Positions 1 to 40,658 of a stretch of 64,000 nt of DNA are shown here, in pieces. The first letter of the stretch is position 1, and every line of letters starts with the position of its first letter. A program made the position numbers and the translations under genes. This DNA comes from Macrostomum lignano (lineage: Eukaryota): positions 1 through 64,000 of the forward strand of contig NIVC01003518.1 in assembly GCA_002269645.1 (NCBI GenBank), in the 5' to 3' direction. The notes beneath the pieces were generated by a model. The model made no database searches, had not been told where the DNA came from, and saw nothing but the letters and a program-made list of their open reading frames with translations.

Positions 1-2212
1 GGCAGGCGCTGCTGGTCTGCTCTCAAAATCCACTCAACCCTGTAAGATATCGAAAATGACCTGCAAATAATCGAAATTTCTAAAATAAAGCCAAATATAG
101 TACAAATATTTTATCCCGTAGGTACTTAAAACATGAAATCTTCACAGAAAAATTTTCATTGTAGAAGTCAGCAGTTATCCTCGCGCGCGGGAAATGAATT
201 GCTTCTTTTCGTAAGCATTTATATAGTAGCTATAAATAGTTCCGCCCCCCCAAGTCTCGATTCAGTGCATCAGTCGTTAAGAAGTGTTTTTATACTAGTG
301 ATTGTTTTTAAAAAGAAATTCATTACATATTTGCAATTAAAATGATTAAAATCCGGAGGCGCCATTCTAATTAATTAATTACAGAGCACCAGGCGCTAAT
401 GCAGCCCCTTAAGAGTTGATGAATTCAGTTGGTCTACAGTAGATTTCTTGCAAACAAACCTTTGAAAGCTGCTTCTACGGTAGGTTAAGCTAAATTTATA
501 ATCCATACAAGGACGCTGCACAGGTAAATGTGCCAACCTTCTAATTTAGCTATCCATGACCGTGGCGTATCATGATAAAACTTATTAAATCGAAAACAAA
601 ATCTTATTCAACTATATTTATCACATTAACATGGTTTCTTTCATTATTTATAGAAACTATGGAAACATATCGCAGTATATTTGGCACATGAAGTGCTTTA
701 GTTAAAATTTCCCTTAAAATCTTGAAGTTAAAGTTTGAAGAAAATCGGTTCAGCCGTTTTTGCTAAAATCGATCACATACCTAGATAGATACCTACCTAC
801 CGACAGACCATTTTTAGTATATAGGATTTCCCTTAAAATCAATTAATACGAGTAAAATGTACTTAACGGTGAATAAAATACACAGTTTATCAACAAAACC
901 CACCGTATTAGGTGTTAACTATTAAACAAAGGGTTACAGCGCGTGTACGTTTTTAGTTCGACAGAGCAAAATATAGTAACATTTTTCATATCGTATTTTA
1001 AGAATCTTTGTTAGCAGTAGTGAGTAGCGAAAAGCAAAGCATCTTTTTAAGCAAAGAGGCAAATTTTTAAATTAGAAAAAATTGTTTGATTATGTTTATT
1101 ACATAGTTGGGTGCTTCTATAATTACTCTAAGGGCCCTAAAGTCGTATTCGAGGCGTGCTAGAAGAGTCTAAGAAAGAAAGACCATCTGTAAGAGTTTAA
1201 GTTAGAGCTGTAATATTTAGCAATTATAAAAACTCTATTTAGTCTACTTTAGTCAGTAGAAAGTTAAGCGCTAACACAACGACTTTTGGACGACTTTTTT
1301 TGTGATTCTTACCAGTGAGCTGCTCAATTTCATACTCAACTGACAATGTTAATGTTATCTCTAAACTGTACTAGCCATCTACAATAAAAAATTGCTAATT
1401 TTTTGGAGGAGGGTGGATATATTCAGTCTTCTCATTGGTTCAAAAACTACTCATTAAAAATCTAAGTTTAAAATTCGGTCTTAATATTTTGCATTCACTC
1501 TACTGTTTTTGTATTCAAATTCTTAGTCATATTATGTATTTTTCAGATCCTTTTGTACACCATTTATTGTGAATGTGTTTTTCAATTTAATTTGACCTAA
1601 TTCTAACTCATTAATTTCAATTGGTAATGGTAGTCACTTATTGAAAAAATGTTCCATTTTTTGGGGCGAGTGTCGCGACTTTCCTAGTCATTTCTTTAGT
1701 TCACCTTCACTTGTCTCTGTTTACTCTGTTTTCGCTCTCTCTGTCTGCTCAATCTTGTTATTCTTATCTCTCTCTCCCTTGCTGCCTTCTGATTGGCTCC
1801 CCATTCTCGCCTTTATCTTCAGTCGCGCACTTCACCCCTCTCCTTATTATCTGGAGTCAACCCCCCTCTAAATTAGTCATATAAATACACTTGTTTGGGC
1901 CCTGCGCCCACTTACTGGCTGGCTTATCTTAGATTCAATTTAACTCTAATTTAGTGCTAGCTTTTTTAGTCTTAGTCATTTTCTCTACAGCAATGTCTCT
2001 TTAGCGGGCACCTAGGAACCTAGGAGTTGGGCAACCCCATTCTCCCACGGAACTGCTGATAGTTGCAGGTTTATTAGCAAAACTGATTTCACTTACGGTG
2101 AGAGCACAAAAACCGGGAAGGTGTTTTATAAAAAATCTAAATTCCAAACAGAAACTACACGATGTAATTAAAAAAACACTAACAGCTGGTGTCAAATCAA
2201 TCAATCAATCAA

Positions 2213-2650
2213 TCAACAGGGATTAAGCTCAAATTCGCGCAATATTTTCAAGCCTTCCAAACAGCCGAAACGTTTCAGCGTTTCGGCCAGCTGCGACACT
2301 GTGAGGCCCCGATCTCGAATCAAGTTTAGCAGGCCTTGGTGCAACAAGTCGGCAGGATTTGTGTACTGGCGCTGCAGCAACTCCAAGTTGACAGCTGAGA
2401 TGCCCAGATTCTCCAAAACCGGCCGATATTTGCTGCTCAAATCTTGAGAATTGCACAAACGTCGGGCCAGACCGGTTGTTGCAACAATTTCAGCATAGGA
2501 ACGTTGCAACAATTCCACAATGTCACTCTGGTGCCCCGCTGTCACATGCTGGGACACTCTGACGGAACCGCTGCCACCGGTGGGGCGGTAAAATGACACC
2601 ATTTCACCTCCAACAGTTCCAATGCTCACGGTGAAGGCTCCACTTCTTCG
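2213..2650 (-). CDS. Gene B terminal exon: linker + death domain
   Basis: Acceptor cctcAG at 2651-2652, phase 0. Helical domain DIVELLQRSY..LARRLC..LRDRGLTVSQLAETLKRFGCLEGLKILREF aligns with the ORF at 40803-41129; the C-terminal pattern is typical of death-fold domains. Confidence 0.75.
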   Translation of the reverse strand, partial: RRSGAFTVSIGTVGGEMVSFYRPTGGSGSVRVSQHVTAGHQSDIVELLQRSYAEIVATTGLARRLCNSQDLSSKYRPVLENLGISAVNLELLQRQYTNPADLLHQGLLNLIRDRGLTVSQLAETLKRFGCLEGLKILREFELNPC

Positions 2651-5600
2651 CTGAGGGGTGTGTGTGTGTGTGTGTGTGTGCGGTCAGTGACAATTTGACC
2701 ATCAGTGCCAATTCGACTATTAGCGACAATTAGACTGTCAGTGACAAAGTGAATACCAGTAAGAAATTGACTATCAATGACAATTAGACTCTGTCAGTGA
2801 CAATTAGACTCTGTTAGTGACAATTTGGCTGACAGGGACAATTTGACCATCAGTGCCAATTCGACTATTAGCGACAATTAGACTGTCAGTGACATAGTGA
2901 ATACCAGTAAGAAATTGAATATCAGTGACAATTAGACACTGTCAGTGACAATTTGACTAACAGTGACAATTTGACTATCAGTGACAATAGGATTGTCAGT
3001 GACAATTTAACTGACAGGGACAATTTGACTATTAGGGACAAATTAAATATCAGTGACAAATTTAATATCAGTGACAATTAGACACTGTCAGTGACAATTT
3101 GACTATCAGCGACAATTAGATTGTCAGTGACAATTTAACTGACAGGGACAATTTGACTATCAGTGACAAATTGAATATCAGTGACAGTTTGACTATCAGT
3201 GACAATTAGACTTTGTCAGTGTCAATTTGACAATTAGTGACAATTTGACTATCAGTGACAATTTGACCATCAGTGACAATTTGACCATCAGTGACAATTT
3301 GACTATCAGTGACAATTTGAATCAGTGACAATATAACAGTAAAAGCTTACCGATGATTGGCTGGATGAAACAGACTGGTCAACATTACCAGAGAGCTTTT
3401 CAGCCTCAGACACAGGTCGACCCTCAAACTGCATGGAAACAAGAAAGCATCGCAAGAATCATAGTATATCTTTGCACAAAAATGATTCATAATTCAGCAA
3501 CTTACGTCTGGTTGATTAGACTGATCCATCGCATTGTCCAGCTGAAATTTAAACATTTGTAGGACTGGACGTGTTTAAGCTTTCGATGTATATCAGCTTT
3601 AGTAAATAGACTTTGTAATAATTTTATGGATATTTAACACCTGTAGGATTGGGTGGGATTTTAACACCTGTGGGGATCGGATGGGATTTTAACACCTATG
3701 GGGATCGGATGGAATTTTAAAACCTGTGAAATCGGATGGGATTTTAACACCCTGTGGGGATCGGATGGGATTTTAACACATGTGAAATCGGATGGGATTT
3801 TAACACCTGTGGCCTGTGGGGATTGGATGGGATTTTAACACCTGCGGGGATCGGATGGGATTTTAACACCTGTGGGGATCGGATGGGATTTCTGATACCA
3901 TCACTGAGCCAACAACCCAAACAAACCTCCAGAACACTGAGCTCCTCTTCAACCGGACCAAGTGACACAGTCCTCGCTCGGACCTCAGCCGACGGAATGG
4001 TGTCAGCCGGTGGCAGCTCGCCCAGCTCATTCAGCACTCGGTTTCTCTCCGCTCCATCTGGGTCAGGCTGCACCTTCTCCACAGGGCGCTGATTTCGCTG
4101 AAAGTTGCCCGTTGCTCCGGCACCTGACAGGCCATTTTCTCCACAACAAGCTTAGTAATTTTTTGCAACTGTTCAAGATCTGCATCCCAGTTTCTCACAG
4201 GAATCTTATTAAAGAAACTATCGTCAACTAAGAGTTGAAAATCTCGAATGTGCTGTCCGATGCGTACTCTGCCTTTGAATGCTTCGATACGGTCCCCAAT
4301 GACCTGACGAACGGACAGCTGACCGAATGCTTCGACTACGAACACAGCGTAGAGATACCTGTCGCCGAATATGTCCGGCTGTCTCAGTGGATCGTCGTAA
4401 GTTTCTGGCAAGCGACGTTCGACTCCACGCAGTCGCTCAAATGCTAACGTGTTCTGCGTGGCGATTGACTCCACTGTGCGTTTGGACAGGCCGAAATCCG
4501 CGATCTGGCGTGGTTGGGAGAGCGGCGCCTGTCTGTGCTGTCATTAGCATCTGACATTCTAGTCTGTGCTGTCGTTAGCATCTGACATTCTGGTCTGTGC
4601 TGTCGTTAGCATCTGACATTCTAGTCTGTGCTGTCGTTAGCATCTGACATTCTGGTCTGTGCTGTCGTTAGCATCTGACATTCTAGTCTGTGCTGTCATT
4701 AGCATCTGACATTCTAGTCTGTGCTGTCGTTAGCATCTGACATTCTAGTCTGTGCTGTCATTAGCATCTGACATTCTAGTCTCTGATGTCATTAGCATCT
4801 GACATTCTAGTCTCTGATGTCATTAGCATCTGACATTCTAGTCTGTGCTGTCGTTAGCATCTGACATTCTGGTCTGTGCTGTCGTTAGCATCTGACATTC
4901 TAGTCTGTGCTGTCATTAGCATCTGACATTCTAGTCTGTGCTGTCGTTAGCATCTGACATTCTAGTCTGTACTGTCATTAGCATCTGACATTCTAGTCTG
5001 TGCTGTCGTTAGCATCTGACATTCTAGTCTGTGCTGTCATTAACATCTGACATTCTAGTCTCTGATGTCATTAGCATCTGACATTCCAGTCTGTGCTGTC
5101 ATTAACATCTGACATTCTAGTCTCTGATGTCATTAGCATCTGACATTCTAGTCTGTGCTGTCATTAACATCTGACATTCTAGTCTCTGATGTCATTAGCA
5201 TCTGACATTCCAGTCTGTGCTGTCATTAACATCTGACATTCTAGTCTCTGATGTCATTAGCATCTGACATTCTAGTCTGTGCTGTCATTAACATCTGACA
5301 TTCTAGTCTCTGATGTCATTAGCATCTGACATTCTAGTAGTCTGTGCTGTCATTAGCATCTGACATTCTAGTCTGTGCTGTCGTTAGCATTTGACATTCT
5401 AGTCTGTGCTGTCATTAACATCTGACATTCTAGTCTGTGCTGTCATTAGCATCTGACATTCTAGTCTGTGCTGTCATTAGCATCTGACATTCTAGTCTGT
5501 GCTGTCATTAGCATTTGACATTCTAGTCTCTGCTGTCATTAGCATCTGACATTCTAGTCTGTGCTGTCATTAGCATCTGACATTCTAGTCTGTGCTGTCA

Positions 5601-6005
5601 TTAGCATTTGACATTCTAGTCTGTGCTGTCATTAGCATCTGACATTCTAGTCTGTGCTGTCATTAGCATCTGACATTCTAGTCTGTGCTGTCATTAGCAT
5701 CTGACTCATAAACAAATAACGCTACTATTAGTAGGCAAAAACTAAATAAATAAAAAACTAAGTATTAAGTCAAGTTTCAACCAGACCTTGGCATTCAGCT
5801 GGTCATCAATCAGGACGTTGTCAACGGCCAAGTCTCGATGAAGAATTCCGCCACCGTCCCCGTTCTGCAGGAATTCGAACCCGTCAGACACCTGCAGCAT
5901 CCAAGATGTCACAAGCCAGGGGTGGCGGGTCCTGCCGCCGCCCATCTGCTGCTGGTGTTAGGAGAGTTTGGGTGGTACATGCACTCAATGTGATAGTCGA
6001 TAGCC

Positions 6006-6066
<61 letters not shown>

Positions 6067-6067
6067 T

Positions 6068-6134
<67 letters not shown>

Positions 6135-9100
6135 CTAAGACACTAAGACAGACAGACACTAAGACAGACAGACACTAAGACAGAGAGGCATAAAGACAGG
6201 CAGACACTAAGACAGACAGACACTAAGACAGAGAGGCATAAAGACAGGCAGACACTAAGACAGACAGACACTAAGACAGACAGGCTCTAAGACAGACAGA
6301 CACTAAGACAGACAGACACTAAGACAGACAGACACTAAGACAGACAGACACTAAGACAGACAGACACTAAGACAGACAGGCTCTAAGACAGACAGACACT
6401 AAGACAGACAGACACTAAGACAGACAGACACTAAGACAGACAGACACTAAGACAGACAGACACTACATGTATGACAGACAGACAGACAGACAGACACTAA
6501 GACAGACAGACACTAAGACAGACAGACAGACAGACACTAAGACAGGCAGACACTAAGACAGACAGACACTAAGACAGACAGACACTAAGACAGACAGACA
6601 CTAAGACAGACAGACACTAAGACAGACAGACACTAAGACAGACAGACACTAAGATAGACAGACACTAAGACAGACAGACACTAAGACAGACAGACACTAA
6701 GACAGACAGACACTAAGACAGACAGACACTAAGACAGACAGACACTAAGACAGACAGACACTAAGACAGACAGACACTAAGACAGACAGACACTATATTC
6801 TCAATCAAAAGCAACGCAGACAGTTTCAAGCACATACCATGGTGGACAGCCGCTTGGAGAACACCCTCAGACTGCCGTGCTTGCAGTACTCCATGGCGTA
6901 CCCGACCAGTTTTAACACTTCGTGACAGTAGATGTACAGAATTTTAATGAAAGCGCCGCGCTTCTTGCCCAGGTCGTGCATGTACTTGATCTCGTGCACC
7001 AGGTGCTTCACTACCCTGAATTTGAATAAACGGTAAGTACATGCGATACATGTGTAGAAATCAGTACTGAATTAGTCTTCAGTTCTAGAAATTAACTATT
7101 CTCAAAACTTTTCTCCCTGCTGTCTTCATTACTTTACGTGAGAACCTGTCTCTCTGCTCTTCCCCATTCCTTGAGAATCTGTCTCTCTGCTCTTCCCCAT
7201 TCCTTGAGAACCTGCCTCTCTGCTCTTCCCCATTCCTTGAGAATCTGTCTCTCTGTTCTTCCCCAGTCCTTGAGAATCTGTCTCTCTGCTCTTCCCCAGT
7301 CCTTGAGAATCTGTCTCTCTGCTCTTCTCCATTCCTTGAGAATCTGTCTCTCTGCTCTTCCCCAGTCCTTGAGAATCTGCCTCTCTGCTCTTCCCCAGTC
7401 CTTGAGAATCTGCCTCTCTGCTCTTCCCCAGTCCTTGAGAATCTGTCTCTCTGCTCTTCCCCATTCCTTGAGAATCTGTCTCTCTGTTCTTCCCCAGTCC
7501 TTGAGAATCTGTCTCTCTGCTCTTCCCCAGTCCTTGAGAATCTGTCTCTCTGCTCTTCCCCATTCCTTGAGAATCTGTCTCTCTGCTCTTCCCCAGTCCT
7601 TGAGAATCTGTCTCTCTGCTCTTCCCCAGTCCTTGAGAATCTGTCTCTCTGCTCTTCCCCATTCCTTGAGAATCTGTCTCTCTGCTCTTCCCCAGTCCTT
7701 GAGAATCTGTCTCTCTGCTCTTCCCCATTCCTTGAGAATCTGTCTCTCTGCTCTTCCCCACTCCTTGAGAATCTGTCTCTCTGCTCTTCCCCATTCCTTG
7801 AGAATCTGTCTCTCTGTTCTTCCCCAGTCCTTGAGAATCTGTCTCTCTGCTCTTCCCCACTCCTTGAGAATCTGTCTCTCTGCTCTTCCCCACTCCTTGA
7901 GAATTTGTCTCTCTGCTCTTCCCCATTCCTTGAGAATCTGTCTCTCTGCTCTTCCCCACTCCTTGAGAATCTGTCTCTCTGCTCTTCCCCACTCCTTGAG
8001 AATCTGTCTCTCTGCTCTTCCCCATTCCTTGAGAATCTGTCTCTCTGCTCTTCCCCAGTCCTTGAGAATCTGTCTCTCTGCTCTTCCCCAGTCCTTGAGA
8101 ATCTGTCTCTCTGCTCTTCCCCAGTCCTTGAGAATCTGTCTCTCTGCTCTTCCCCATTCCTTGAGAATCTGTCTCTCTGCTCTTCTCCATTCCTTGAGAA
8201 TCTGTCTCTCTGCTCTTCCCCATTCCTTGAGAACATGTCTCTCTGCTCTTTCCCTAGAATGCAATGCCTACATTTCAAGCTGAACTCCATAAACTAGTCG
8301 GCCTTATCAATTTACCAGTCCTTCTTGCTCATATCCTGCTGTTCATCCAGTTTAAATATTTTCAGAGCCATAGGCGCGTCATTTGGCGCGCTTTTCAAGT
8401 TGCACCGATGACAAACAGCAAAAGAGCCTTTGCCTGAAAAATGAATACGGGGCATAGAAAACACCCGGTAACCGAAATATGATTTAATAAATGAATATGA
8501 TTAATACTGGAGCTCGATAATAACAACTTACCAATTAAACTTTCTTCGGGAAATTCTACTTCAGTGTTCCACAAAACTTCTGGCGCTTTCAAATCTGGAG
8601 CAATCTGTAAAACAACATCATGGTTAATTTAGAAGAAGAGTACACCATGACTCGACAATTGATCAGCCAAAAAATGAACTCACAGATTCATTGAGCTCTT
8701 GTCGAACAAGCCTCAAAACTTCCTGACGCGCCCTCTCCATCTTGTCAGGGCTGCAGGCGCGCCAAATGTCTTTAACTTCACTAAATGAAGCCCTCTGTTC
8801 CGGGATGTGATGCGACATTATCTGTACCACTTGCAAGATTGCCTGTTTGAGCCTGTTTAGGTCTCCATCAGACGAGGCCACTCCAACGAAACAATTAGAA
8901 TTTAATAATTGTTGAAAATAATCCACATGTTTGCCCGACCGCAATAGGTCAGTAAACTGTTGGACATTGTCACTTATCTGCTCACGGATTGACAGCTCAG
9001 TGAAGGCTTCTACAACCAGCAGTCCGTACAGATACCTGTCGCTAAACTGGTCAGGCTGTCGGATCGGATCTGAGACAGTCTCCGGCAGCTGCTTATCAAT

Positions 9101-11013
9101 GCCTCGCTTTTGCTCAAAGTCCAAAGTTTGTGGCGATAAATTTGCTTCCGTGAGTTTCTTTGAGAGGCCGAAATCCGCGATCTGGGATTAGTCAGATAAA
9201 TCAGTTCTGCTATAAATTACAGATTACATGTGTTTTACATTACTGAAGGATACATGGATGCAGATCAAACCAACTCAGTGACACACATGCGGATGCAGAT
9301 CAAACCAACTCAGTGACACACATGCGGATGCAGATCAAACCAACTCAGTGACACACATGCGGATGCAGATCAAACCAACTCAGTGACACATGCAGATGCA
9401 GATCAAACCAACTCAGTGACACATGCAGATGCAGATCAAACCAACTCAGTGACACACATGCAGATGCAGATCGAACCAACTCAGTGACACACATGCAGAT
9501 GCAGATCAAACCAACTCATTCAATCCGGACACACAGGAATGCAGACAACGCACAATAACGTGTGAGTATGTTAATAGGTGTTAAGATGGATTATAAGCGA
9601 AAAAGTGTCAAAGCGAACACACCTTGATATCGAGCTGGTCATTGATTAGCACACTATCCACAGACAGATCTCTATGTATAATCGCTCCTTTTGGTCGAGT
9701 TTGCAAATAGTGGAAAGCATCTGCAATCTGGAGCATCCAGCTGGTTTTCAACCACGGATGATACAGACTATCTAGATTGCTCTGGAAATAAATGAAAAGA
9801 ATGAATTATTGAAATCAATCAGCATTCAGCAATGAATAGAAAAATACTTCTATTTCAACTTATAGTTACCAATTTTGACAGATGCAAACTAAAGGACCGA
9901 ATACTGCCCAGCCGACAGTATTCCATAGTAAAGCCGGAAAGTTTAGTATCCCGACTGTACAAATGGTAAACGCTAATAAACTGTTCGCGTTCCTGACGCA
10001 GATCGTTTAGCAGCGCGATCTCTTTTACTAAGTGGTTGACCAGCCTGGAGAAGAGAAATAAAAATGTTGACAACAATAATTTATATTGGAAGCTAAACTT
10101 TCCAATGGAAGACATTTTATGCAGGTCTTAACGAGGATATGTATTTTCTTTAGTTTTTTTTGTCAAAAGGGTTATGTTATTTGTAAGATCAAAATACAGG
10201 GAGTGTCATAGGCCCCAAGGGCTGGATTCCAAGTGCAGTCGCATTAATTTCGGTGCACCTTTATTTAACGATAAATAAAGTCAGGACCGCTATACACTCG
10301 TGCGTGTGCCTGTGTGTATGACTGCGTACGTATCGGGGAGTCGATGGAATGGGCAGTAACCCAGTAATGCCTTTTGACGGTTGTGTGACAATGTCGCTTA
10401 AAGTGCGCCATGATATAGCAAAAATAATTGCTATATCATACCCCAAGTTCCGTTTTCATTAACTATTTGTTTAGATAATTTTTAAAGAGAAATATTGAAG
10501 CAAACAAATATTAAAAACTTTCAGAAACAACTAAATAAAACTCACCACTGCGTTCGACTGGCGTCGTTAAATTCGAATAACTTGACGGCTAACGTTTTCA
10601 TTGTAGGATCATTTTTGAGCCAGCATCGATGCACGCTTGCAATGCTGCCTTTGCCTAACAGATAGGATTAAAACAGATAAAAAATAGTTTGTTTTAATTA
10701 GCAACGTGGATTAGCAATCTATTATTTTATGCAGGTACACAACTGATATTTCGGTCTTTAATAGTGCTGATTGCAGTGAAAATTTCTAGGGAACAATTAT
10801 AGAATAAATAGATGACTATATAAAAAATTCTTAGACCATTTGGCACTTAAATGATAGAAAAAAACCTACTGCACTTTTGTCCTAGCTTTAGAAAAAAATG
10901 ACAAAGAAGTTCATTAAAAGTTCACACAAAGTACGCATAAAAAAGTTCTTACCTATCAACGAATTGCTGGGATATATAACGTCATTTTGCGAAGTGTTCT
11001 TTAATTTTGCCAT
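2213..11013 (-). CDS. Gene B: tandem double protein kinase + C-terminal death domain (RIPK1-like order), 13 exons, ~888 aa if one 1-bp frameshift is corrected
   Basis: Phase-consistent GT-AG exons: 10953-11013, 10546-10654, 9870-10044, 9623-9781, 8684-9181, 8532-8604, 8316-8433, 6838-7015, 5787-5951, 3927-4504 (frameshift ~4050), 3506-3541, 3351-3428, 2213-2650. Kinase 1: LIGKGSIASV, LAVK, VKEI, HRDLSVDSVL, IADFG. Kinase 2: LIGKGSFAVC, MALK, VHEI, HRDLAVDNVL, IADFG. The last exon is death-domain-like (..LTVSQLAETLKRFGCLEGLKIL). Confidence 0.85.
2683..3332. repeat. 18-bp minisatellite (GACAATTTGACTATCAGT), intronic
   Basis: Imperfect tandem copies; preceded by (GT)n at 2657-2680. Confidence 0.9.
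3640..3890. repeat. 28-bp minisatellite (AACACCTGTGGGGATCGGATGGGATTTT), intronic
   Basis: About 9 imperfect tandem copies. Confidence 0.9.
3927..8604 (-). CDS. Gene B second (C-terminal) kinase domain, canonical catalytic motifs present
   Basis: G-loop GKGSFA, beta3 Lys (MALK), alphaC Glu (HEI), HRDLAVDN, DFG, LPE (APE equivalent), GDRYLY (subdomain IX equivalent); 5 exons with the same phases as the paralogous domains. Confidence 0.85.
4530..5705. repeat. 31-bp minisatellite (TCTGTGCTGTCATTAGCATCTGACATTCTAG), intronic
   Basis: About 38 near-identical tandem copies. Confidence 0.95.
6004..6795. repeat. (ACAG)n microsatellite grading into a 16-bp unit ACTAAGACAGACAGAC, intronic
   Basis: Directly visible tandem array. 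Confidence 0.95.
7135..8250. repeat. 33-bp minisatellite (CCTTGAGAATCTGTCTCTCTGCTCTTCCCCAGT), intronic
   Basis: About 33 copies; generates the spurious 360-400 aa repeat ORFs. Confidence 0.95.
8684..11013 (-). CDS. Gene B first (N-terminal) kinase-like domain, catalytic-loop Asn replaced by Ser
   Basis: MAKLKNTSQNDVIYPSNSLIG|KGSIASVHRC..LAVK..VKEI..HRDLSVDSVL..IADFG..QLPE..SDRYLYG. The GTGAGT donor at 8683 joins in phase 0 to exon 8532-8604. Confidence 0.85.
9256..9518. repeat. 33-35-bp minisatellite (GGATGCAGATCAAACCAACTCAGTGACACACATGC), intronic
   Basis: About 8 tandem copies. Confidence 0.9.
10212..10410 (+). mobile_element. tRNA-derived SINE copy (internally deleted)
   Basis: Shares GGCTGGATTCCAAGTGCAGTCGC and GGGAGTCGATGGAATGGGCAGTAA..AAAGTGCGCCA with the copies at 13.9, 18.8 and 57.3 kb. 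Confidence 0.75.
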
Positions 11014-12619
11014 CGGCGGTAAAAGTTTTGTTATACTGAAAAGAGGAAAAGCACAATTAACGAAATTACGAGCTCGTAGTATTGCCGACTAGGAATCACA
11101 CAGCTAAGGCCATTTTCTAATTTTAGATCATAAACTGATCACATTTCGGAGGATTTAAAGCCAATAATAAAGGGAAAAACAAGTTATGTCCTAACAGCCT
11201 CTAGCACTAGGAAAGATTCGGAACTTTTTCAGAGTTTTTAACAACAGCTGAACATATCTGCAATTCTAGAACATATGTACAAACAAATAATCATGCAAAT
11301 AAAGATAGTATTTAAAAATATTAGTAATGTATATTACTAATAACTCGTATTTTTCTGCTCAAAATGGCATATGAATGAAGCAATAGTTTGTTATTCAAGC
11401 GCTTCTATAAAAAATCATAAACAACATCAAATCAAGAAATAATTACATTTATTAAAAAACAGCCACACTACACATCAGCTGATGCTGGGTTATGACAATT
11501 TTACAAGTAATATTACAACAGAAACATGACATATGTTTAATTTTATATTTTATATCTGGAGGGACAAGGTAATTCTTGGAATTTAAACATATTCTTTCAA
11601 ACACATTTAAATTACGAGTATTAGAAAACAATAAACACATTTCACGATAAAGCTGTTCGATTAACCCGATTGAACTAAACAAAACCAGAGATTTCAAAGT
11701 GACTTAATTAAAACTCCTGTTATTAGTAATCGTGCAGGGTCTCTCTAGGATCATATTCGTCGGCCTCGTAGTCGCAAGCGTTACGAGGATAATAGTTGAA
11801 ATCGTCGTCAAAATAATTAGTTAAATGAATATTAATTTCGTTAAAGAAGTCTTCATGAGATCTCTGGGCCGAAGGCATCGAATCAAATGCTATTTTCTTA
11901 GCTACTGCACTTGCAGCAGTACTGATGGCACCAACACGGCTAGAAGAGGACACAACTTCTAATGCATTAGCACCACCCGCTTCAACACGATTGTCAGAGG
12001 CATCACTAGCTGACATCTGTTGCATAGACGAATGTTCAACTTCAGCACTGTCAGCATGCAGTAGGTCTTGCACAAACATTCTCTCTGCTTCCATTCTCAA
12101 ATTATCGCAGTCTCTCCAACAGTCGCAAATTGTATCGAAATCTGCCCGCTTCTCTGGCTCTTGATGCGCGGTCAACCTGACAACCTGCTTGACTGTTGAT
12201 TGCAACTGTTCCAATTCTTCGTCTTTATCTGTAGCAACATCGAAACACTTTTTATCTAATAAATCTTCAAACGATTTCAAATGGCGACCTTCTTTAACCA
12301 TTGCAGTGTACTTGTCCACTTCTTTACCAACTAGCTGTTGAATCGACTGTCGCGAGAAAGCTTCAACAACGCAGATGCCGTACAGATACCGGTCAGAATA
12401 AGCATCCGGTTGGCGTAACAAATCGTCGTATTTTTCTGGTACTCGACGTTCAATTGTTCGGCGTTGTTCCAGCTCAAGGGACTGCTGTGTCGCGATGGAG
12501 TCTGCGATGTTTTTAGCCAGACCGAAATCAGCAATCTGCAATAAAGCAAAATTTATAGCAGCTACTGTTCTGTAGTGACTAACTTGAAAGAGATTATATT
12601 TACCCATATTACATTGTCC

Positions 12620-14189: not shown

Positions 14190-15962
14190 AAACCCTCAGC
14201 ATACGCTCATATTTTACCCTCAAAAGATCATATTCAACGAAATCAACTCCAAAACTTACAATGTTCTCAATTCGGTTAATGAATTGCCGTAGACTTCCAT
14301 GCTTGCAGTGCTCCATAACATAGCCACAGAATATACCCTCCTTGATAAACAGGCAAAGCACTTTAACAAATTCGTCTCGCTCCTGGCTCAACTTGTGCAT
14401 GGCTTGAACTTCTCGCATTAATCGCTTATTAACCCTACAATGTAGACAATTTATAGCCAATTTTATTTTGAAGAACTGCTTAAGCTAACACAATAATAAA
14501 GCCTACAAATTTTTATTCACCAGTTCATACTGATGCCTTTTATGCTGTCTTTTACTGGCGATAGCAGCTCTTTTAACACTAGCTTAGCCTGCGACTCATC
14601 AGATTAAAGTGAGCAAAGCTGGCACTTAGCAAATGCACCTTGGCCTGAAATATTTGTTGTACAGACAAAACACTTTTAGGAAAATACTAACTGCATTGAA
14701 TGGATGTCAATATTCAACAAAATAGAGTTCAAGATACAAACATACCAAGGTATCCATTTTCATATAGAACAATATCCTGCTCTGTGACATTGTCTAAGAG
14801 ATTTTTTGAGCTCATTGTCTAATAGGCATGAAATATAGATAATCAATACATACTTTAAATTTAAATTCAAAGCAAATTCATTATTCCACCAACAAAATAT
14901 AATAATACTGTATAATAATGAATAGTAAATGAAAACTATAATATCTTAAAACTAAAAACCAATAATTAAAATTCCCATATCATTACTATAACTAAAAGCA
15001 ATAAATGAGAACAAAACAAATTAAAAGCAATTATTTTTTAATTTCTAATTTTAGCATTGCCTTATAGAAACCATTTTGTGGGCTTTATCAATTCTATGGA
15101 ATATTAGATTTTGGTAAAAATAGTTCCGTTTATGCCAATTTTAGACTGATACAAACTTTTTATACCAACTAAGACAATATCTTTTTGGCTTCCAAATGTT
15201 ATGCAAGAAATTAGACATAGACATAAACATTTAAATAAATAAAATTAAAGTGCAAATGTTTTTGAAAATTTAAGCTATTATCTTTTATATAATTGTAATA
15301 GTGCCCAATTTGAGTTCGCGTGCACTTCTATTATTTTCTCTTTCTTTCTCTCTATGTCAACCCACACCCATGCGTATAGTCTTTCATGAAATTTCTTTTT
15401 GTTTCTGATTGGCTGTAAATGTGTGAATAACGAACCCTAACCAATGGAGTGCTTAGTGCCTACCCTGTTGGAGAAATCAGATTGGTTAGGATTTTCTAAG
15501 CTGTATCTTTCAACCTGCCTCCCTTTCACACAGTCAAGTCTATAAATTCAAGCAAGCTGGCAGGCTAATAAATCAAGTTTCTTTGACTAACAAAGTCTTC
15601 TATAGTTGGCGGGAATTTGAACTCCAAAATATGTGGCTATATAATTATAAAACATTTGCAAAATAATTGTTAAACTATATACTAATAGTTAAATATAAGA
15701 CTTTATGCTATGTACAACTGACCAGGTCTTAAAAACTTTGATATACTCACAAATTCCAGGGTCTAGATTGTGTACTTATATATACTAGAACAAAATCCTA
15801 TTTTAACTAAATACATGTTAGTGTATATAAAAAATGGATTTTTTAAAATAAAAGTATACATCAAAATTTCTCACAAAAAGGCTATTATCATTTAAAAACA
15901 TATAATAGCCTAAAAGATTAATGCATAATTAGTTTTAACTAATAATTTTTACTCATAATTAG

Positions 15963-20075: not shown

Positions 20076-21176
20076 TTTCTTTTTATTGCTTAAAAACAAT
20101 AAATTGTATTGTTTTATTGTTTTATTGTAAACACGTACTTTCTATAAATTCGACAATTTAATAGTACATTTTGCATTTTGCATAAAGTCTCGTGGATATA
20201 TTTGAACGGTGTTACATGTACGCTCTACTTACACTGCAATAACACTTACTCAGCTTTTGAAGTACCGTACTACCTATAATGAAGCTCAATATCCGCTCAA
20301 AAATACGTGAATACCCTAATTGTTATCGAGGTATGGTTTCTCCGAGCTAAAGCGGAATTACCTTGGTACAGCCTTAGAAAATCCTCTGGTTATAATTTAC
20401 ATTGGACTGCATGCCCTTTATCGGGAGCCTCTTCTTATAATCGCTTTGCTTGTACATTGTATCTAAAAATAGAACTGCGTCTCATGACTTCAAATAAACA
20501 ATGAATAATCCGTGGATTGACCGTGGAATACCTGTGGAAAATTCCGCCAAAACTCTACATCGTTGGCACCGAGAAGAAATGCTTCGAAAATTTAAAAATG
20601 CACTTGTGCTTGTGCAGAAATTCAGAAAAATTCATATTGAAAGCAGACACTTATACTACGTGTCATGAACTCGAAGAGCGTCAAATCATTGTATGTTAAA
20701 AGAAGCAAGAATACAAGTATGTTAGGCAAATGTAAGTTAAAGTTTACATATTCTACAAATGCTTCTATAGTAAATTTTCGATCTTAAATTTGAAACAGGT
20801 AGTGATACTTTTGCAGACATTCTTCGCTGCGTTCGCAGGCAAGTACCCTTCTCTGTCTGTCAGACTGTTTTAAAAATTCTCAAAACACTTACGAGTACGT
20901 GACGCTTTTGGTATTTATACTGTTTTTCACTTTCACTGATGGAAAAAACGAGGTAAATTATAAATTACTAAGCTTGATAATTTTCAGATTAAATTCAATT
21001 ATTAAAGCATTACGAGAGCCGATCCAGGACAGTGTGGTAGCAATAAAATGGATGGATCATCACATAAATCCACTTGATGACAGAGTAGAATGCCACAATC
21101 TTGAGACTATGGCGAGTCTGCTGAACAAACTTGTAAGTCAATTTGAGAACTTTGATAGTTTTAGCAACGAGGGCTT

Positions 21177-23806
21177 CAACACCAGGGGCTTTAGCACCAG
21201 GGGCTTTAGCACCAGGGGCTTTAGCACCAGGGGCTTTAGCACCAGTGGCTTTAGCACCAGTGGCTTTAGCACCAGGGGCTTTAGCACCAGGGGCTTTAGC
21301 ACCAGGGGCTTTAGCACCAGGGGCTTTAGCACCAGGGGCTTTAGCACCAGGGGCTTTAGCACCAGGGGCTTTAGCACCAGGGGCTTTAGCACCAGGGGCT
21401 TTAGCACCAGGGGCTTTAGCACCAGGGGCTTTAGCACCAGGGGCTTTAGCACCAGGGGCTTTAGCACCAGGGGCTTTAGCACCAGGGGCTTTAGCACCAG
21501 GGGCTTTAGCACCAGGGGCTTTAGCACCAGGGGCTTTAGCACCAGGGGCTTTAGCACCAGGGGCTTTAGCACCAGGGGCTTTAGCACCAGGGGCTTTAGC
21601 ACCAGGGGCTTTAGCACCAGGGGCTTTAGCACCAGGGGCTTTAGCACCAGGGGCTTTAGCACCAGGGGCGCCAGCACCAGGGGCTTTAGCACCAGGGGCT
21701 TTAGCACCAGGGGCTTTAGCACCAGGGGCTTTAGCACCAGGGGCTTTAGCACCAGGGGCTTTAGCACCAGGGGCGCCAGCACCAGGGGCTTTAGCACCAG
21801 GGGCTTTAGCACCAGGGGCTTTAGCACCAGGGGCTTTAGCACCAGGGGCTTTAGCACCAGGGGCGCCAGCACCAGGGGCTTTAGCACCAGGGGCTTTAGC
21901 ACCAGGGGCGCCAGCACCAGGGGCTTTAGCACCAGGGGCTTTAGCACCAGGGGCTTTAGCACCAGGGGCGCCAGCACCAGGGGCTTTAGCACCAGGGGCT
22001 TTAGCACCAGGGGCTTTAGCACCAGGGGCTTTAGCACCAGGGGCGCCAGCACCAGGGGCTTTAGCACCAGGGGCTTTAGCACCAGGGGCTTTAGCACCAG
22101 GGGCTTTAGCACCAGGGGCTTTAGCACCAGGGGCTTTAGCACCAGGGGCTTTAGCACCAGGGGCTTTAGCACCAGGGGCTTTAGCACCAGGGGCGCCAGC
22201 ACCAGGGGCTTTAGCACCAGGGGCTTTAGCACCAGGGGCTTTAGCACCAGGGGCTTTAGCACCAGGGGCTTTAGCACCAGGGGCTTTAGCACCAGGGGCT
22301 TTAGCACCAGGGGCTTTAGCACCAGGGGCTTTAGCACCAGGGGCTTTAGCACCAGGGGCTTTAGCACCAGGGGCTTTAGCACCAGGGGCTTTAGCACCAG
22401 GGGCTTTAGCACCAGGGGCTTTAGCACCAGGGGCGCCAGCACCAGGGGCTTTAGCACCAGGGGCTTTAGCACCAGGGGCTTTAGCACCAGGGGCTTTAGC
22501 ACCAGGGGCTTTAGCACCAGGGGCTTTAGCACCAGGGGCTTTAGCACCAGGGGCTTTAGCACCAGGGGCGCCAGCACCAGGGGCTTTAGCACCAGGGGCT
22601 TTAGCACCAGGGGCTTTAGCACCAGGGGCTTTAGCACCAGGGGCTTTAGCACCAGGGGCTTTAGCACCAGGGGCTTTAGCACCAGGGGCTTTAGCACCAG
22701 GGGCTTTAGCACCAGGGGCTTTAGCACCAGGGGCTTTAGCACCAGGGGCTTTAGCACCAGGGGCTTTAGCACCAGGGGCTTTAGCACCAGGGGCTTTAGC
22801 ACCAGGGGCTTTAGCACCAGGGGCTTTAGCACCAGGGGCTTTAGCACCAGGGGCTTTAGCACCAGGGGCTTTAGCACCAGGGGCTTTAGCACCAGGGGCT
22901 TTAGCACCAGGGGCTTTAGCACCAGGGGCTTTAGCACCAGGGGCTTTAGCACCAGGGGCTTTAGCACCAGGGGCTTTAGCACCAGGGGCTTTAGCACCAG
23001 GGGCTTTAGCACCAGGGGCTTTAGCACCAGGGGCTTTAGCACCAGGGGCTTTAGCACCAGGGGCTTTAGCACCAGGGGCTTTAGCACCAGGGGCTTTAGC
23101 ACCAGGGGCTTTAGCACCAGGGGCTTTAGCACCAGGGGCTTTAGCACCAGGGGCTTTAGCACCAGGGGCTTTAGCACCAGGGGCTTTAGCACCAGGGGCT
23201 TTAGCACCAGGGGCTTTAGCACCAGGGGCTTTAGCACCAGGGGCTTTAGCACCAGGGGCTTTAGCACCAGGGGCTTTAGCACCAGGGGCTTTAGCACCAG
23301 GGGCTTTAGCACCAGGGGCTTTAGCACCAGGGGCTTTAGCACCAGGGGCTTTAGCACCAGGGGCTTTAGCACCAGGGGCTTTAGCACCAGGGGCTTTAGC
23401 ACCAGGGGCTTTAGCACCAGGGGCTTTAGCACCAGGGGCTTTAGCACCAGGGGCTTTAGCACCAGGGGCTTTAGCACCAGGGGCTTTAGCACCAGGGGCT
23501 TTAGCACCAGGGGCTTTAGCACCAGGGGCTTTAGCACCAGGGGCGCCAGCACTAGGGGCGCCAGCACCAGGGGCTTTAGCACCAGGGGCTTTAGCACCAG
23601 GGGCGCCAGCACCAGGGGCGCCAGCACCAGGGGCGCCAGCACCAGGGACGCCAGCACCAGGGGCGCCAGCACCAGGGGCGCCAGCACCAGGGGCGCCAGC
23701 ACCAGGGGCGCTAGCACAAGGGGCGCTAGCACAAGGGGCGCAACCACAAGGGGTGCCACCACAAGGGGCGCCACCACAAGGGGCGCCACCACAAGGGGCG
23801 CCAGCT
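21177..23806. repeat. 15-bp satellite (ACCAGGGGCTTTAGC; variant ACCAGGGGCGCCAGC) in gene C intron 3
   Basis: About 175 near-perfect copies; source of the three ~900-aa repeat ORFs. Confidence 0.97.
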
Positions 23807-25300
23807 CCTGAGTATTAGAACTTAGCATTAGATCTGCAAAGCTGCTGTAAAAGGGCGCCAAATGAGCTGGCAAGAGGTGCCACTGTTTGCCATCCTACGG
23901 AGTGGGGGCAGCCCCTTACTTTCCTTAAGCTTCATAATTACATCTATGCATAAGCGCCAGCTTCATGCACATCCTATTATTTGTCTTTTACGGCTGCCTT
24001 TCAGTGCACAGTTCAGGAAGATATTCAATGCCTGACGGTTCAGCTGGCAAACGGAGTGGCTGAGGCCTTAGATTATCTGCAGAGCATGCAGCATTCGGCT
24101 GACGAAGGCTGGGATGGAGAAGTCACTACGGACGCTGTACTTATTGACGAGCATCTGAATGCAAAGGTAAGGCGCAGTGCTCACGATTCACACACTAAAA
24201 TCGCTTGTCAAGACATTGAAACTGACATCGTGTGACTCCCGATCAATGGTAATTTTTCAGGTTTCACTCGCAACGGATTCACTAAAAGCTACGGGATTTC
24301 AAGATCGAACAGCTTCTAAAGAACATTGTCGAGACTCTTTCCGGCAGCGAAATCAGCTTAGGGGAATATTTTATAAGTATACCATCTTTGTTTTGGAACT
24401 TTTCTCTAAAATCTTATTAAAGAAAACAGTAATGCCAGAGAGCTTCGAACAGCTGCTAAAATTGCGGACGCGTCCGAAACGATTTATTAATCATCTGGAA
24501 GAACTCTGGAGTGAAGCGCGAACTAAGGGCCGCAGAGACAGTACAAATCTGACTCGACTTAAGTCAACGATTGTTCAAGTTGCAAGCATCTCCTTGTCCG
24601 AGAAGGAAGCAACCATGGCCGAAGTGAGTCAGCTTTGGAAACGCAGCGGCTTATTAAAGCAAGCACTGATTGATCGAGAACTTGTACTTCAAGTACTCCA
24701 AGGTACAATGGATAAAAGCGTTGACTTGTGGTCTGGAGATTCGGCAGCTGGCACTCTTATGGACAAGAAAACACGGAGCTTTACTGAAACTGGAAAACCA
24801 ACAGAGGAAGCATGTAAAATGGAGATTTTTTCAACTGCTACAACATCAACTAAGACAAGCAGAGTTACCGTCACGAATCTCCCTGATAACCGACAGTTTT
24901 TCAGCGGTACGTCAAAGTCAAAGACGTTTTTTGTCTTGTCTAAAAGTACGCTTATGACGTGTGCTGCGCCACGAAAAAAGAATGGTTTGAGACAGCTGTT
25001 TTCCAAGATGTTCTTATCTATTTTAGCTAATCAGTTGCGTAATGCAGTCGGTAAGATTTAAAATAAAAAGGATTTAAAGTAATAGCGACATCTGTCCAAT
25101 AGACATTACCAATAGGTAATTTCCAAACATTTGTTTTAATTTCATCAAGCTATCAAAACTCTGTTCTAATATAAATTAGCAGCAAAATTTGGTTCTTCAG
25201 AGCTTGGCTTCAGCGGGAGCCCAGGTGGCCTGAAGATCAGCATCTCGTCGATAGCCAGTGACCTCTCGACTGCAGTAGTCAGACAGACTATTCCCGCTAT

Positions 25301-29337: not shown

Positions 29338-32300
29338 ACAGGGAAGCTCTGTACAGGTACTCGGTCTCGTCTTCGGGATTTACTTTCAAGACAGGCGCGG
29401 CACTTACTGATAAAGTTCTCGGTGACACGGGCTAATCCGGGCCTCCAGAATCGTTCACGTAGCCGCTTCAACGTCTTCGTCTGGCCGAGGTGTCCACACA
29501 GTGGCGAACTGTGGAGCTCCTGGAGCACCTGGGCATCAAGAGACTCAGGCAGGACAACCTTCGGGGACTGCTGGCCGTCGGTCAGGTCGATCATCAGCAG
29601 GCCGTTGTCCTCTAGCAGATTATCATAATATCCGAGCAGGTTCCGCTGCTCCTTCGTCAGTCGCAACCGGGTGTCGAACTCAGGCTTCGGGGCTTTGTTC
29701 TCGACCAAGTTGAGCACATAGCCAATTGCTCGGTCGGCGCGCTGCGCGTCGACAAACTGTTGCCGCGTCATCGGCAACCTCATAAAATCGGTGAGCACGG
29801 CGCGGCATGGCTGAGGGTTCATGACTCCCGCAGTCTCCGCTTCTGTGGCTCGCAGTTGATCACACGACTCCGTCTTGTCGGCGTCAGGATTAGGTCGCTC
29901 CGAGGGACTTTGTTTCACAACGTCGGCGTACGATCGCTGATCTCGTTTCGAAGTTCTCATCGTCGCTCTCTTGACAGGAATTTCCGCAGCTGGAGCAGTG
30001 CACTTGCCTCCACTGCACAGCCCAGGCGACTCTTGGCTGTAGGGCGAGACGCAACACGTGAAGCACGCCTCGTCACAAGCAGCCGTAGCCGTCGGCTCGA
30101 TCATCGTCGTCATTGGGTGAGTCTTCTCCAGCACTGGGCGGTGTCGCAAAGGGGGACTCGACTGTCCGCACAGGCGATGAGCAGCTGTCTGTCGGCTCGG
30201 GGGACAGAGCGTTGACCTTGCAGCCGTCGCGAGAGTATGGCCTCTGTCAACACGGCGAGAACTCTCAGCGCAAAACTCCGGGGAGTTGAACTTACATTGC
30301 TGGTCTGGATTCGCGTTGTGGGCTGTCATCAGAAGGGCTGCTTGTTCAGTGGCCTCTGAGTCGTGGTCCATGGGCGTCTCCAGATTCCGAGACCCGCAGT
30401 CTTGGACATCATCAAGGAGGTCTACGTCAGCAGTGGCCTCCGAGGGTTTGTCCGGGCGAATCTCCAAGTAACGGCAGTCGGCGTGGGCGTCGCTGCGGAG
30501 GGCTGAGGTGTCAGTGGCCTCCGGGTTGGTGTCCAAACCGGTCTCCAGGCGTTGACTGCAGCGATGGTTGTCGTGCTGAAGGACTGCTGGCGCAGTGGCC
30601 TCCAGGTCTTCGGCCAGGGCAGTTTCGGCCTCCTTGTTGCGAGTGTGGACCTTCTTCGAAAGGGCTGGTCTTGCAGTGGCCTTCCGGGTGGTGTCCAGGT
30701 CCGGCTCCAAGCTGGTGTCATCATCGTGTCGGGCTGCAGAATCGGGATGCTCAAGCAGTCGGCCGTGCTCGAAGTCAACCGGTGGTGTCTCCGGGCGTCT
30801 TGACAGGGCGTCAGCGTTGGCGTGGTCCTTGCCTTTGCGATGGTGAAGCTGGAAGCGGAACTCGCTTAATCGCTCAATCCAACGGCCCAAGATGCCTGTG
30901 ACCTGCGTCTGGTTCAGCAGCCACAGCAAGGCCCGATGGTCAGAACGAACTTCAAACTTCTTGCCGATTAAATAATGACGGAAATGTCGCATCGCGTCCA
31001 CGATTGCAAGCAGCTCTTTCTTCGTGACCGTGTAGCGCTTCTCAGGATCACGAAGCTTCCGGCTAAAGAATGCAATTGGGCGCTCGACGCCGTCGGATTG
31101 CCGTTGTCCAAGACAAGCGCCTATGCGAATGTCTGAGGCATCCGTGTCTAGGACAAACTTCACATTAGGATCTGAGTTAAACTCAGGCAGAGCGAGAACT
31201 TCAGTCGAACACAACTTCTTCTTCAACGTGTCGAACGCTACCTGGTGCTCATCAGTCCAATGCTGCCGCAGGCTGCCGATGTCCTTTCGAGTCAGGGCAT
31301 GTAGCGGCGCAGCAAATCCAGCGTAGCCGTTGACAAACTTGTGGTAGTAATTGGCGAGGCCTAGGAATTGTCTCAGTTGAGTAACGGACTGTGGCACGGG
31401 CCAATCACGGATCTGCGCAATCTTGTCCTCACAGGTCTTCAGGCCGTCGGGAGTCACGACGTGGCCTAGATAATGCAGCTCCTTGAGGAACAAATGGCAC
31501 TTCTTCGGCTTGACCTTGAGGTTGGCTGCGATAATCCGCTGGAGTACAGTCCGCAGGTTGTCCAGCTGCTCCTCGAAGGTCACGGAGTGCACCACGATGT
31601 CATCCATGTAGCCAAGCGCAGTCTTTGGCGTCAGGCCGTCCAGGAGCTTATTGATGCAACGCTGAAAGCTGCCTGGACTATCGTGGAGACCCATCGGCAG
31701 AACATTGAAACAGAATTGTCCGCGGTCAATCACAGAGAACGCCGTCAGGTGCTGATCGCAGTCGCGCAGCGGGATCTGCCAGAATCCTTGAGCGAGATCC
31801 AAGCTAGAGTACCACTGGGCACCACGCAGCTTCGCGAAGGTCTCCTGAATGTGCGGCAGCGGGTACGGGTGGTACACACACTTGTCGTTGAGAGCTCTGA
31901 AGTCATGCACCAGCCTGATGTTTCCGTCCTTCTTGGGCACTATCAGCATTGGCGAGTTGTAGCTAGAATAAGCCGGGCGAATGATGTGCTTCGCCAGCAT
32001 CTCGTCTAGCAGGGCGTCTAGCTTGTCCTTCAGATGAGGCGGGATCCTGCGCGGTGGTAGCGCAACTGGTGTCCGATCCTTCAGGATGATCTCGTGGGTC
32101 ACCAAGTGTGTCAGGCCAGCGTCTAGCAGATGCTTCGAGAAGGCTGCTTGACACTCAACTAGTAGATCTCGCACTCTCTGTCGTTGATCTTCGGACAGCT
32201 CGCTGTTGATCTCGACTTCCTCTAGCCAAGCTGTGCTGGACTCTTCAGGGCTCCTTGGCAAATGTCGCACTTCAGGTTCCGGCGTCTCTTCCAGGTACAT

Positions 32301-35572: not shown

Positions 35573-40658
<5,086 letters not shown>

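Follow-up and report, generated by a model that had tools for sequence, protein, structure and literature searches.

A predicted tandem-kinase gene with a putative C-terminal death domain in the flatworm Macrostomum lignano

Organization of the tandem-kinase locus

Macrostomum lignano is a free-living flatworm whose genome is rich in repeats and has recently undergone duplication (PMC5730564). Here, we describe a tandem-kinase locus on the minus strand of a 64,000-nucleotide (nt) stretch of its DNA, hereafter the window (contig NIVC01003518.1, positions 1 to 64,000), taken from assembly GCA_002269645.1 (Mlig_3_7), a PacBio/Canu assembly with Pilon polishing that has a large duplicated fraction and is highly redundant. 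The reverse complement of the locus retrieved from this contig matches window positions 1-21025 in every base. Rebuilt exon by exon, the gene extends from an ATG at 11013 to a TGA at 2215-2213, and all 12 of its 12 introns have GT-AG boundaries. We place a probability of roughly 65% on the interpretation that the locus is one 13-exon gene whose mRNA encodes, in order, a first kinase domain (K1), a second kinase domain (K2), a low-complexity linker of ~110 amino acids (aa) in which a TVSIG motif is conserved, and, at the C-terminus, a death domain (DD), giving 888 aa from the ATG at 11013. In GenBank, the locus is BOX15_Mlig009930g3, an RNA-seq-based model, and other copies are listed as Mlig009930g2/g5 and Mlig005512g2. 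The Mlig_3_7 annotation was not made ab initio; it derives from RNA-seq assemblies (StringTie/TACO) and a de novo transcriptome, and gene boundaries were set by cutting the transcripts where spliced-leader (SL) and poly(A) sites had been mapped by experiment (PMC5730564). The deposited product of the locus (P0174, PAA51010.1; coding sequence 11025->4031, 672 aa) comprises the two kinases and no death domain, while the same gene on other contigs is deposited as a kinase-kinase-DD protein in a single frame (P0001, 894 aa, from two contigs; P0175, 915 aa).

K1 spans residues 1-334 and five exons (11013-10953, 10654-10546, 10044-9870, 9781-9623 and 9181-8684) and matches the Pfam Pkinase domain with E=1.3e-22. 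Its motifs include the G-loop GKGSIASV, the β3 lysine within LAVKLF (10592-10575), HRDLSVDS (9676-9653) and DFG (9175-9167). The last K1 exon closes with QELNES at 8684, followed by the donor GTGAGT of a 79-nt, phase-0, GT-AG intron (8683-8605) whose acceptor is TTTTACAG; retention of this intron would end K1 as ESVSSFFG at an in-frame TGA (8665-8663). Immediately downstream lies a 73-bp exon (8604-8532) homologous to the first exon of K1, which starts in phase 0, reads IAPDLKAPEVLWNTEVEFPEESLI plus one G, and ends in phase 1 inside a glycine codon of the G-loop. This exon opens with ATT GCT (Ile-Ala) opposite the ATG GCA (Met-Ala) of K1 and contains no in-frame ATG of its own.

The rest of K2 is encoded on the same strand at 8433-8316, 7015-6838, 5951 (or 5948)-5787 and from 4504 onward, with a Pkinase match of E=3.5e-21 and canonical motifs: the G-loop GKGSFAVC, MALKIF (8371-8354), HRDLAVDN (5840-5817) and DFG (4498-4490). 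The exon sizes of the two domains run in parallel (61/109/175/159/498 in K1 and 73/118/178/165/578 in K2), the phases are 0, 1, 2, 0, 0 in both, and the domains are 47% identical (tblastn E of about 1e-43, far beyond chance). Both also pass the Pfam cut-offs for PF00069 and PF07714 (31.7 and 23.1 bits), with K1 scoring 80.9 and 81.5 bits and K2 scoring 76.2 and 71.0 bits. An earlier sequence-only reading of this DNA had proposed a phase-0 splice from 8684 to 8604 into a 73-bp homologue of the first coding exon, leading into a second G-loop exon, and an exon layout common to both kinase domains. The exon reconstruction and the junction in BOX15_Mlig009930g3 bear out the splice, GKGSFAVC follows directly on the 73-bp exon, and the parallel sizes and identical phases confirm the common layout.

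The two domains differ in their catalytic loops. K2 holds all catalytic residues (ALK, HEIKY, HRDLAVDN and DFG, and also LPE) and, by residue criteria, is predicted to be a catalytically competent kinase. K1 keeps the lysine, the glutamate, HRD and DFG, and the catalytic-loop asparagine (equivalent to Asn171 of PKA) is replaced by serine in all copies, K1 being the sole member of the family with this residue. K1 is thus predicted to be a degenerate or atypical kinase, a classification that stops short of proving inactivity.

The acceptor of the fourth K2 exon is a NAGNAG site (CAGCAG, 5951/5948, minus strand) that yields a product of 888 or 887 aa, and its use differs among the deposited models, P0001 reading STMQQMGGG and P0174, P0175 and P0173 reading STMQMGGG. 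Downstream of K2, two short phase-0 exons (3541-3506 and 3428-3351) encode a Ser/Gln-rich part of the linker and are present in P0001. The last exon (2650-2213) holds a death-domain-like bundle and the TGA, and the first canonical poly(A) hexamer past this stop is an AATAAA at 2070-2075 on the minus strand. In a comparison of the window with contig L001, a paralogous copy, 889 aligned codons contain 14 synonymous and 7 non-synonymous differences, a ratio of non-synonymous to synonymous changes (pN/pS) of 0.145, and the last exon is 100% identical. These values are consistent with a functional open reading frame (ORF) under purifying selection between copies.

Minisatellites, each of a different kind, fill nearly all of the long introns of the gene (2684-3332, 3628-3891, 4531-5705, 6006-6795, 7139-8254 and 9257-9518), their units measuring 18, 28, 31, 16, 33 and 35 nt in as many as 50 copies. 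In four frames, the 33-nt array yields spurious ORFs that exceed 360 aa, and the long ORFs at 7085-8290 were rejected as genes, being this minisatellite in translation inside an intron.

The C-terminal domain and linker motif

The C-terminal bundle covers approximately residues 785-888 (about 2527-2216, minus strand), and several signals suggest a death fold. The Pfam Death domain (PF00531) matches residues 148-217 of the tail with E=0.013 and 16.0 bits, below the gathering score of 22.6. An AlphaFold2 (AF2) model of the last 145 residues, built on an alignment of two sequences (the tail and a plus-strand relic, 40803-41129, that is 30% identical to it), folds as a helical bundle with a predicted local distance difference test score (pLDDT) of 76-91 over the helices. 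When this model was compared with the PDB using Foldseek, the top 21 matches were all death domains, from FADD, Fas, TNFR1, RAIDD, RIPK1, ankyrin, DR3, p84 and IRAK, with target-normalised template modelling (TM) scores of 0.54-0.75, root-mean-square deviations of 2.1-4.2 Å and E-values of 0.14-2.3; the Foldseek probability is 0.84-1.0 down to rank 20 and 0.44 at rank 21. A three-member family profile searched against the PDB finds the Pelle death domain best (E=0.018), with the NF-kB p105 death domain and the Dronc CARD also among the matches.

Since the Pfam, Foldseek and family-profile signals, three weak and independent lines, point to the same fold, the C-terminal domain is very probably a death domain. 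The alternative is that the C-terminal 100 residues form a lineage-specific helical domain merely resembling a death domain, which would make the protein a plain tandem kinase. The Pfam score below its gathering threshold, the weak Foldseek E-values and the shallow two-sequence alignment behind the AF2 model would all fit such a domain, as would the tails of the paralogue P0021 and of the plus-strand relic, which by themselves show no Pfam Death match. Against it stand the Pfam Death and Pelle E-values and the uniform class of the 21 top structural matches, and we regard this alternative as improbable. The death domain that the sequence-only reading had placed at the C-terminus falls below the Pfam threshold, while the structural and profile signals point to the death fold. 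Pfam-based architecture searches miss this domain.

Among 222 fetched proteins, a death-domain-like domain occurs solely in the M. lignano kinase-kinase-DD copies and in Mlig029749 (P0021), a separate locus encoding a single kinase of the same family with the same C-terminal domain. A homologue search with the tail alone returned no matches, not even the identical deposited proteins, which reflects an apparent word-index limit. The relic used in the AF2 alignment, a small ORF on the plus strand (MLGDEVDLLTRSYSS...GLRILRDFETSN, then a stop), shares ~30% identity with the tandem-kinase death domain and lies directly 3' of a retroelement ORF encoding reverse transcriptase (RT) and RNase H (37647-40658); it has the appearance of a truncated remnant of a further family member with a DD.

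Within the linker, the segment FTVSIGTVGG (residues 749-758; 2606-2635, minus strand) is predicted with low confidence to form a β-hairpin 25-30 residues upstream of the death domain. The segment is conserved, reading PTVSIGKVLGN in the single-kinase paralogue Mlig029749. RHIM (PF12721) gave no Pfam match at E<=10 in the linkers of both paralogues, and the core is VSIG, not (I/V)-Q-(I/V/L)-G. By sequence, the TVSIG segment appears RHIM-like in position only and falls outside the RHIM definition.

Continuity and origin of the gene

The junction between the kinases, NES/IAP, is present in the deposited products P0174 (this locus), P0001 (two contigs), P0175 and P0173. No deposited product of the cluster starts at the K2 exon (IAPDLK). 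A search for AATAAA or ATTAAA between the alternative stop of K1 and the acceptor found none, and poly(A) hexamers follow the K0 stop (11453 and 11541; K0 is a third kinase unit described below) and the DD stop (2075). Because RNA-seq-derived models span the junction, none begins at K2, and no hexamer lies between the two kinases, K1 and K2 are supported as parts of a single gene by transcript-derived models at this and four other contigs. In a check of the deposited models for transcripts that end K1 at the TGA at 8663 and give K2 a separate start, all were found to read through NES/IAP. P0173 (572 aa), which starts inside K1, was considered as a separate K2 transcript and rejected; its contig has homopolymer frameshifts of its own in K1 and ends ~2.5 kb upstream of the gene. 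Two UniProt models fusing three kinase units, K0-K1-K2 (P0002 and P0003), were set aside, as they skip exons and stem from an older assembly.

K0 lies directly upstream of K1 on the same strand (14815-14746, 14644-14521, 14434-14260, 13809-13654 and 12535-11723), with its own ATG at 14815 and its own stop at 11725-11723. It has the same five-exon layout and phases as K1 and K2, a long acidic tail and no death domain, and its catalytic motif is HLD in place of HRD. In the window, the G-loop exon of K0 (14644-14521) carries an in-frame TAA at 14604-14606 (GQGAFAKCQLCSL, stop, SDES), at which the paralogous contig L001 has AAA (Lys); either a substitution or a pair of homopolymer errors could account for the change, TTTAA versus TTAAA. 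K0 as deposited (383 aa, window 14528-11723) starts downstream of this TAA. K0 is 42% identical to K2 and 39% identical to K1. At the 5' end of P0175 (contig L005, 10001 onward), the third exon of K0 is spliced out of frame to an acceptor, TTTTCAG, 22 nt upstream of the K1 ATG (window 11035-11036, minus strand), which indicates that K0 and K1-K2-DD share a primary transcript. The same acceptor is also a candidate SL site.

The sequence-only reading had taken the common exon layout to imply an intragenic duplication, which does not hold up, as the layout recurs in K0, an upstream unit with its own stop that had gone unremarked. Because a third, separately terminated kinase unit with the same exon layout lies upstream, we infer that the gene arose from a tandem array (K0, K1 and K2-DD) of which two members fused, rather than by simple internal exon duplication. 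The first codon of K2, ATT, aligns with the ATG of K1, and an acceptor AG stands immediately before it. The single-kinase-DD paralogue P0021 further supports such an array. In the proposed sequence of events, an array of kinase(-DD) genes would have existed first, and K1 would then have lost its own 3' end and become spliced to K2-DD. A donor just upstream of the K1 stop would have been paired with an acceptor exactly at the former start codon of K2 (now ATT), and this start-proximal acceptor, possibly once used for the SL, would have turned into a cis acceptor. On this account, the locus would be a concrete case of a tandem array in a trans-splicing organism becoming a multi-domain gene.

An operon-like arrangement of two genes has to be weighed against a single gene. 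Here, K1 would end at the TGA at 8663, and a K2-DD mRNA would be made by SL trans-splicing at 8604 with the AUG of the SL as its start, the cis-spliced K1-K2 form being minor or read-through. The SL of M. lignano is 35 nt long and ends in ATG, ~30% of genes are trans-spliced and 15% lie in operons, the intercistronic distance has a mode of ~100 bp, and the trans-acceptor motif is [T/C]TNCAG (PMC8629364). The locus fits this picture in several respects: the acceptor at 8604, TTACAG, matches the motif, the gap between K1 and K2 is only 79 nt, and K0 and K1 are co-transcribed. Moreover, K2 has no ATG of its own and begins in phase 0 with the ATT that aligns to the ATG of K1, so that SL-AUG joined to AUU GCU would be in frame. 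However, a consensus cis donor (GTGAGT) stands 79 nt upstream, and such acceptors are expected to be cis-spliced (Conrad et al. 1993, cited in PMC8629364); the annotation pipeline, which cuts transcripts at mapped SL peaks, made no cut here in any copy; and neither a poly(A) hexamer within 8663-8605 nor a deposited product beginning IAPDLK was found. The upstream donor and the lack of an annotated cut argue that cis-splicing dominates at 8604, although some K2-DD mRNA may come from trans-splicing, and we consider two separate genes distinctly unlikely.

The single-gene interpretation must also account for the broken reading frame of this contig. As given, the K2 frame stops at a TGA (4033-4031), ending in MERRETEC (SLTQMERRETEC, then the stop). 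At 4049-4051 on the minus strand, the window reads CGG-AGAG, whereas four other contigs (L001, L002, L004 and L005) read CGGGAGAG, that is, GG in the window and GGG in the others, so that the linker and death-domain exons lie one base out of frame. The 3' part of exon 10 (3927-4048, minus strand) reads ...RNRVLNELGELPPADTIPSAEVRARTVSLGPVEEELSVLE in the shifted frame, as in P0001 and P0173, and is homologous to the C-terminal tail of K1. The truncated 672-aa deposited product is explained by the one missing G at 4051-4049, and once it is restored, the protein reads ...MERERNRVLNELGEL... and the ORF comes to exactly 888 aa. The 888-aa protein of the sequence-only reading is thereby recovered to the residue, although its ORF is broken in the window itself, and of its single gene with two kinases and a death domain, the deposited models place K1 and K2 in one mRNA while the death domain is out of frame here and the product of this contig is kinase-kinase only. 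A micro-intron or alternative donor bypassing the TGA at 4033 was rejected; the sole nearby GT...AG pair is 16 nt apart, and the homologous frame resumes right after the missing base.

The frameshift is most likely a long-read consensus error in a real locus that is intact, because the window and contig L004 (NIVC01004504.1) differ almost solely by homopolymer length. Over 10.8 kb, L004 is 99.75% identical to window positions 1-11343, with 4 mismatches and 23 gap positions, nearly all of them 1-nt homopolymer differences, whereas the truly diverged copies (L001/L002 and L005) differ mainly by substitution (51 mismatches versus 10 gaps in one 2.9-kb block). At 4051-4049, L004 has the full G-run, and it carries one-base deletions of its own within K1 exons (window 10026 and 8793) at which the window is intact, which explains why P0173 begins inside K1. 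L004 and the window appear to be redundant contigs of one locus, each with its own 1-nt homopolymer indels that disrupt the ORF at different places; several deposited proteins of the family would therefore be truncated artefacts, and a homopolymer error has probably cut short the deposited product of this contig. Alternatively, the frameshift may be real, and this copy would then encode a kinase-kinase protein of about 669 aa without a death domain, being a redundant paralogue in decay since the genome was recently duplicated. The stop at 4033-4031, the DD-less GenBank product, the TAA in K0 of the same contig and the highly duplicated genome of M. lignano are all compatible with decay. Yet the change is a single nucleotide in a run of G, in a contig whose near-identical counterpart is intact here and broken elsewhere; the last exon, identical to that of L001, and the pN/pS value speak against a decaying copy, and the K0 stop can also be read as a paired homopolymer error. 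A real frameshift is, on this evidence, unlikely.

Several points weigh against a single, intact kinase-kinase-DD gene. The product deposited for this contig has no death domain, K0 of the same contig also carries a stop codon and the copy could be truly decaying, and both the junction evidence and the GG/GGG call rest on deposited annotation, with RNA-seq reads multi-mapping among near-identical copies. The evidence for the death domain never reaches formal significance, with Pfam under its gathering score and Foldseek E-values from 0.14 upward, and no orthologue outside M. lignano was found to support a conserved architecture. An AlphaFold model of the 888-aa protein, the check suggested in the sequence-only reading, was run with AF2 on a 5-sequence alignment; with a mean pLDDT of 34 and a predicted TM score of 0.22, it says nothing on K1-K2 packing.

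Family relationships, proposed function and surrounding sequence

By sequence comparison, the kinases belong to an orphan family. Single sequences reach only ~36 bits against their best solved relatives (RIPK2, PLK4, BRI1, JAK2 and CTR1), and the family profile reaches ~72 bits (CSF1R, FGFR3, JAK2 and PLK4). A filter-only HMMER pass over 1.84 billion representative proteins returned four below E 1e-30, three of them from M. lignano; the fourth (P0019) was rejected as a relative, being an artefactual repeat of a plant-like kinase fragment, and the family was thus not found outside M. lignano among these representatives. Two Macrostomum paralogues of the kinase family, P0004 and P0020, carry ankyrin repeats. 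Distant matches of the full-length protein include plant kinases of the receptor-like kinase (RLK)/Pelle type, and several plant multi-kinase proteins cover about half of the query. The closest protein match of the conceptual product is a hypothetical protein of M. lignano.

Innate immunity and cell death in animals depend on RIPK1 and the IRAK/Pelle death-domain kinases as central switches, and tandem kinases serve as immune receptors in plants and as cytokine transducers in vertebrates; the protein described here would combine features of both groups. Like RIPK1, it has a kinase at its N-terminus and a death domain at its very C-terminal end, separated by a long intermediate region of low complexity, and TVSIG, a short, conserved, β-prone motif, sits where RIPK1 has its RHIM. 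The structural matches include the RIPK1 death domain, and the best sequence matches of K2 in the PDB include RIPK2. Unlike RIPK1, however, it has two kinase domains and no Pfam RHIM match. The match of K2 to RIPK2 is no better, at ~36 bits, than those to PLK4, BRI1 and JAK2, and K1 and the family profile prefer JAK2, CSF1R and FGFR3, which places the protein outside RIPK orthology. IRAK, Pelle and Tube offer a second comparison, as they pair a death domain with a kinase resembling the tyrosine kinase (TK) or tyrosine kinase-like (TKL) groups, and Pelle supplies the best PDB match of the DD profile. In these proteins, the death domain is N-terminal rather than C-terminal, the kinase is single, and orthology is not detectable.

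The tandem arrangement itself recalls the JAKs, in which two kinase-fold domains follow one another and the N-terminal one is degenerate in its catalytic loop (JH2, then JH1), and both K1 and the family profile find JAK2 JH1 among their highest-ranking PDB matches. FERM and SH2 domains are absent here, a death domain is present, and the K1/K2 pair appears to derive from a local Macrostomum array, independently of the JAKs. Plant tandem kinase proteins (of the RPG1, WTK1/Yr15 and Sr60/Sr62 type) consist of two related TKL-type kinases fused by duplication or fusion, one of which is often a pseudokinase, and have a demonstrated immune role. They share with the flatworm protein the fusion of two related kinase domains, one of them degenerate, but belong to the plant lineage, originated independently and lack a death domain; an immune role for the flatworm protein is conjectural. 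DAPK1 (kinase-ankyrin-ROC-COR-death domain) likewise has an N-terminal kinase and a C-terminal death domain, and the ankyrin repeats of P0004 and P0020 provide a further likeness, yet its single kinase is of the CAMK type and is accompanied by ROC-COR, and the CAMK type and ROC-COR are both absent here. By sequence and layout, the protein appears closest to RIPK1 in domain order, to Pelle in its death domain, and to JAKs and plant tandem kinases in its tandem arrangement, and it is the orthologue of none.

By analogy with these systems, we infer a mechanism in which the protein would join homotypic death-fold oligomers through its death domain. K2, as the active kinase, would be switched on by proximity, in the manner of RIPK1 and IRAK/Pelle signaling, and would phosphorylate downstream targets, while K1 may act as a degenerate regulatory or sensor module of a pseudokinase-like kind. 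A broader conjecture would make the protein a flatworm-specific hub of innate immunity or cell death that converges on RIPK1-like and plant tandem kinase- or JAK-like layouts, with an amyloid-prone TVSIG in the place of the RHIM and a degenerate N-terminal kinase as a sensor or decoy, born when an operon outron became an intron. We offer this picture as a speculation that is quite improbable in its entirety.

The protein is already recorded in GenBank and UniProt as a hypothetical protein. A literature search for tandem kinases with a death domain, RIPK1 in Platyhelminthes and the gene identifiers found no description of the protein or of a kinase-kinase-DD architecture, and the genes are not listed in the supplements of two M. 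lignano expression papers. The unfamiliarity of the architecture, as voiced in the sequence-only reading, thus agrees with this search, although the protein itself had been deposited. Transgenesis is established in M. lignano (PMC5730564), and this genetic tractability makes the function of a kinase-kinase-DD protein directly testable.

The center of the window is G+C-rich and contains a Ty3/gypsy-type pol with RVT_1, RNase H and integrase domains (26869-32708, minus strand) and a second retrotransposon ORF with RVT_1 and RNase H, the plus-strand ORF at 37647-40658 mentioned above. A 970-aa, G+C-rich ORF on the plus strand (20899-23811) matches only low-complexity repeat families (Decapeptide and GLTT) and is probably translated repeat DNA rather than a gene.

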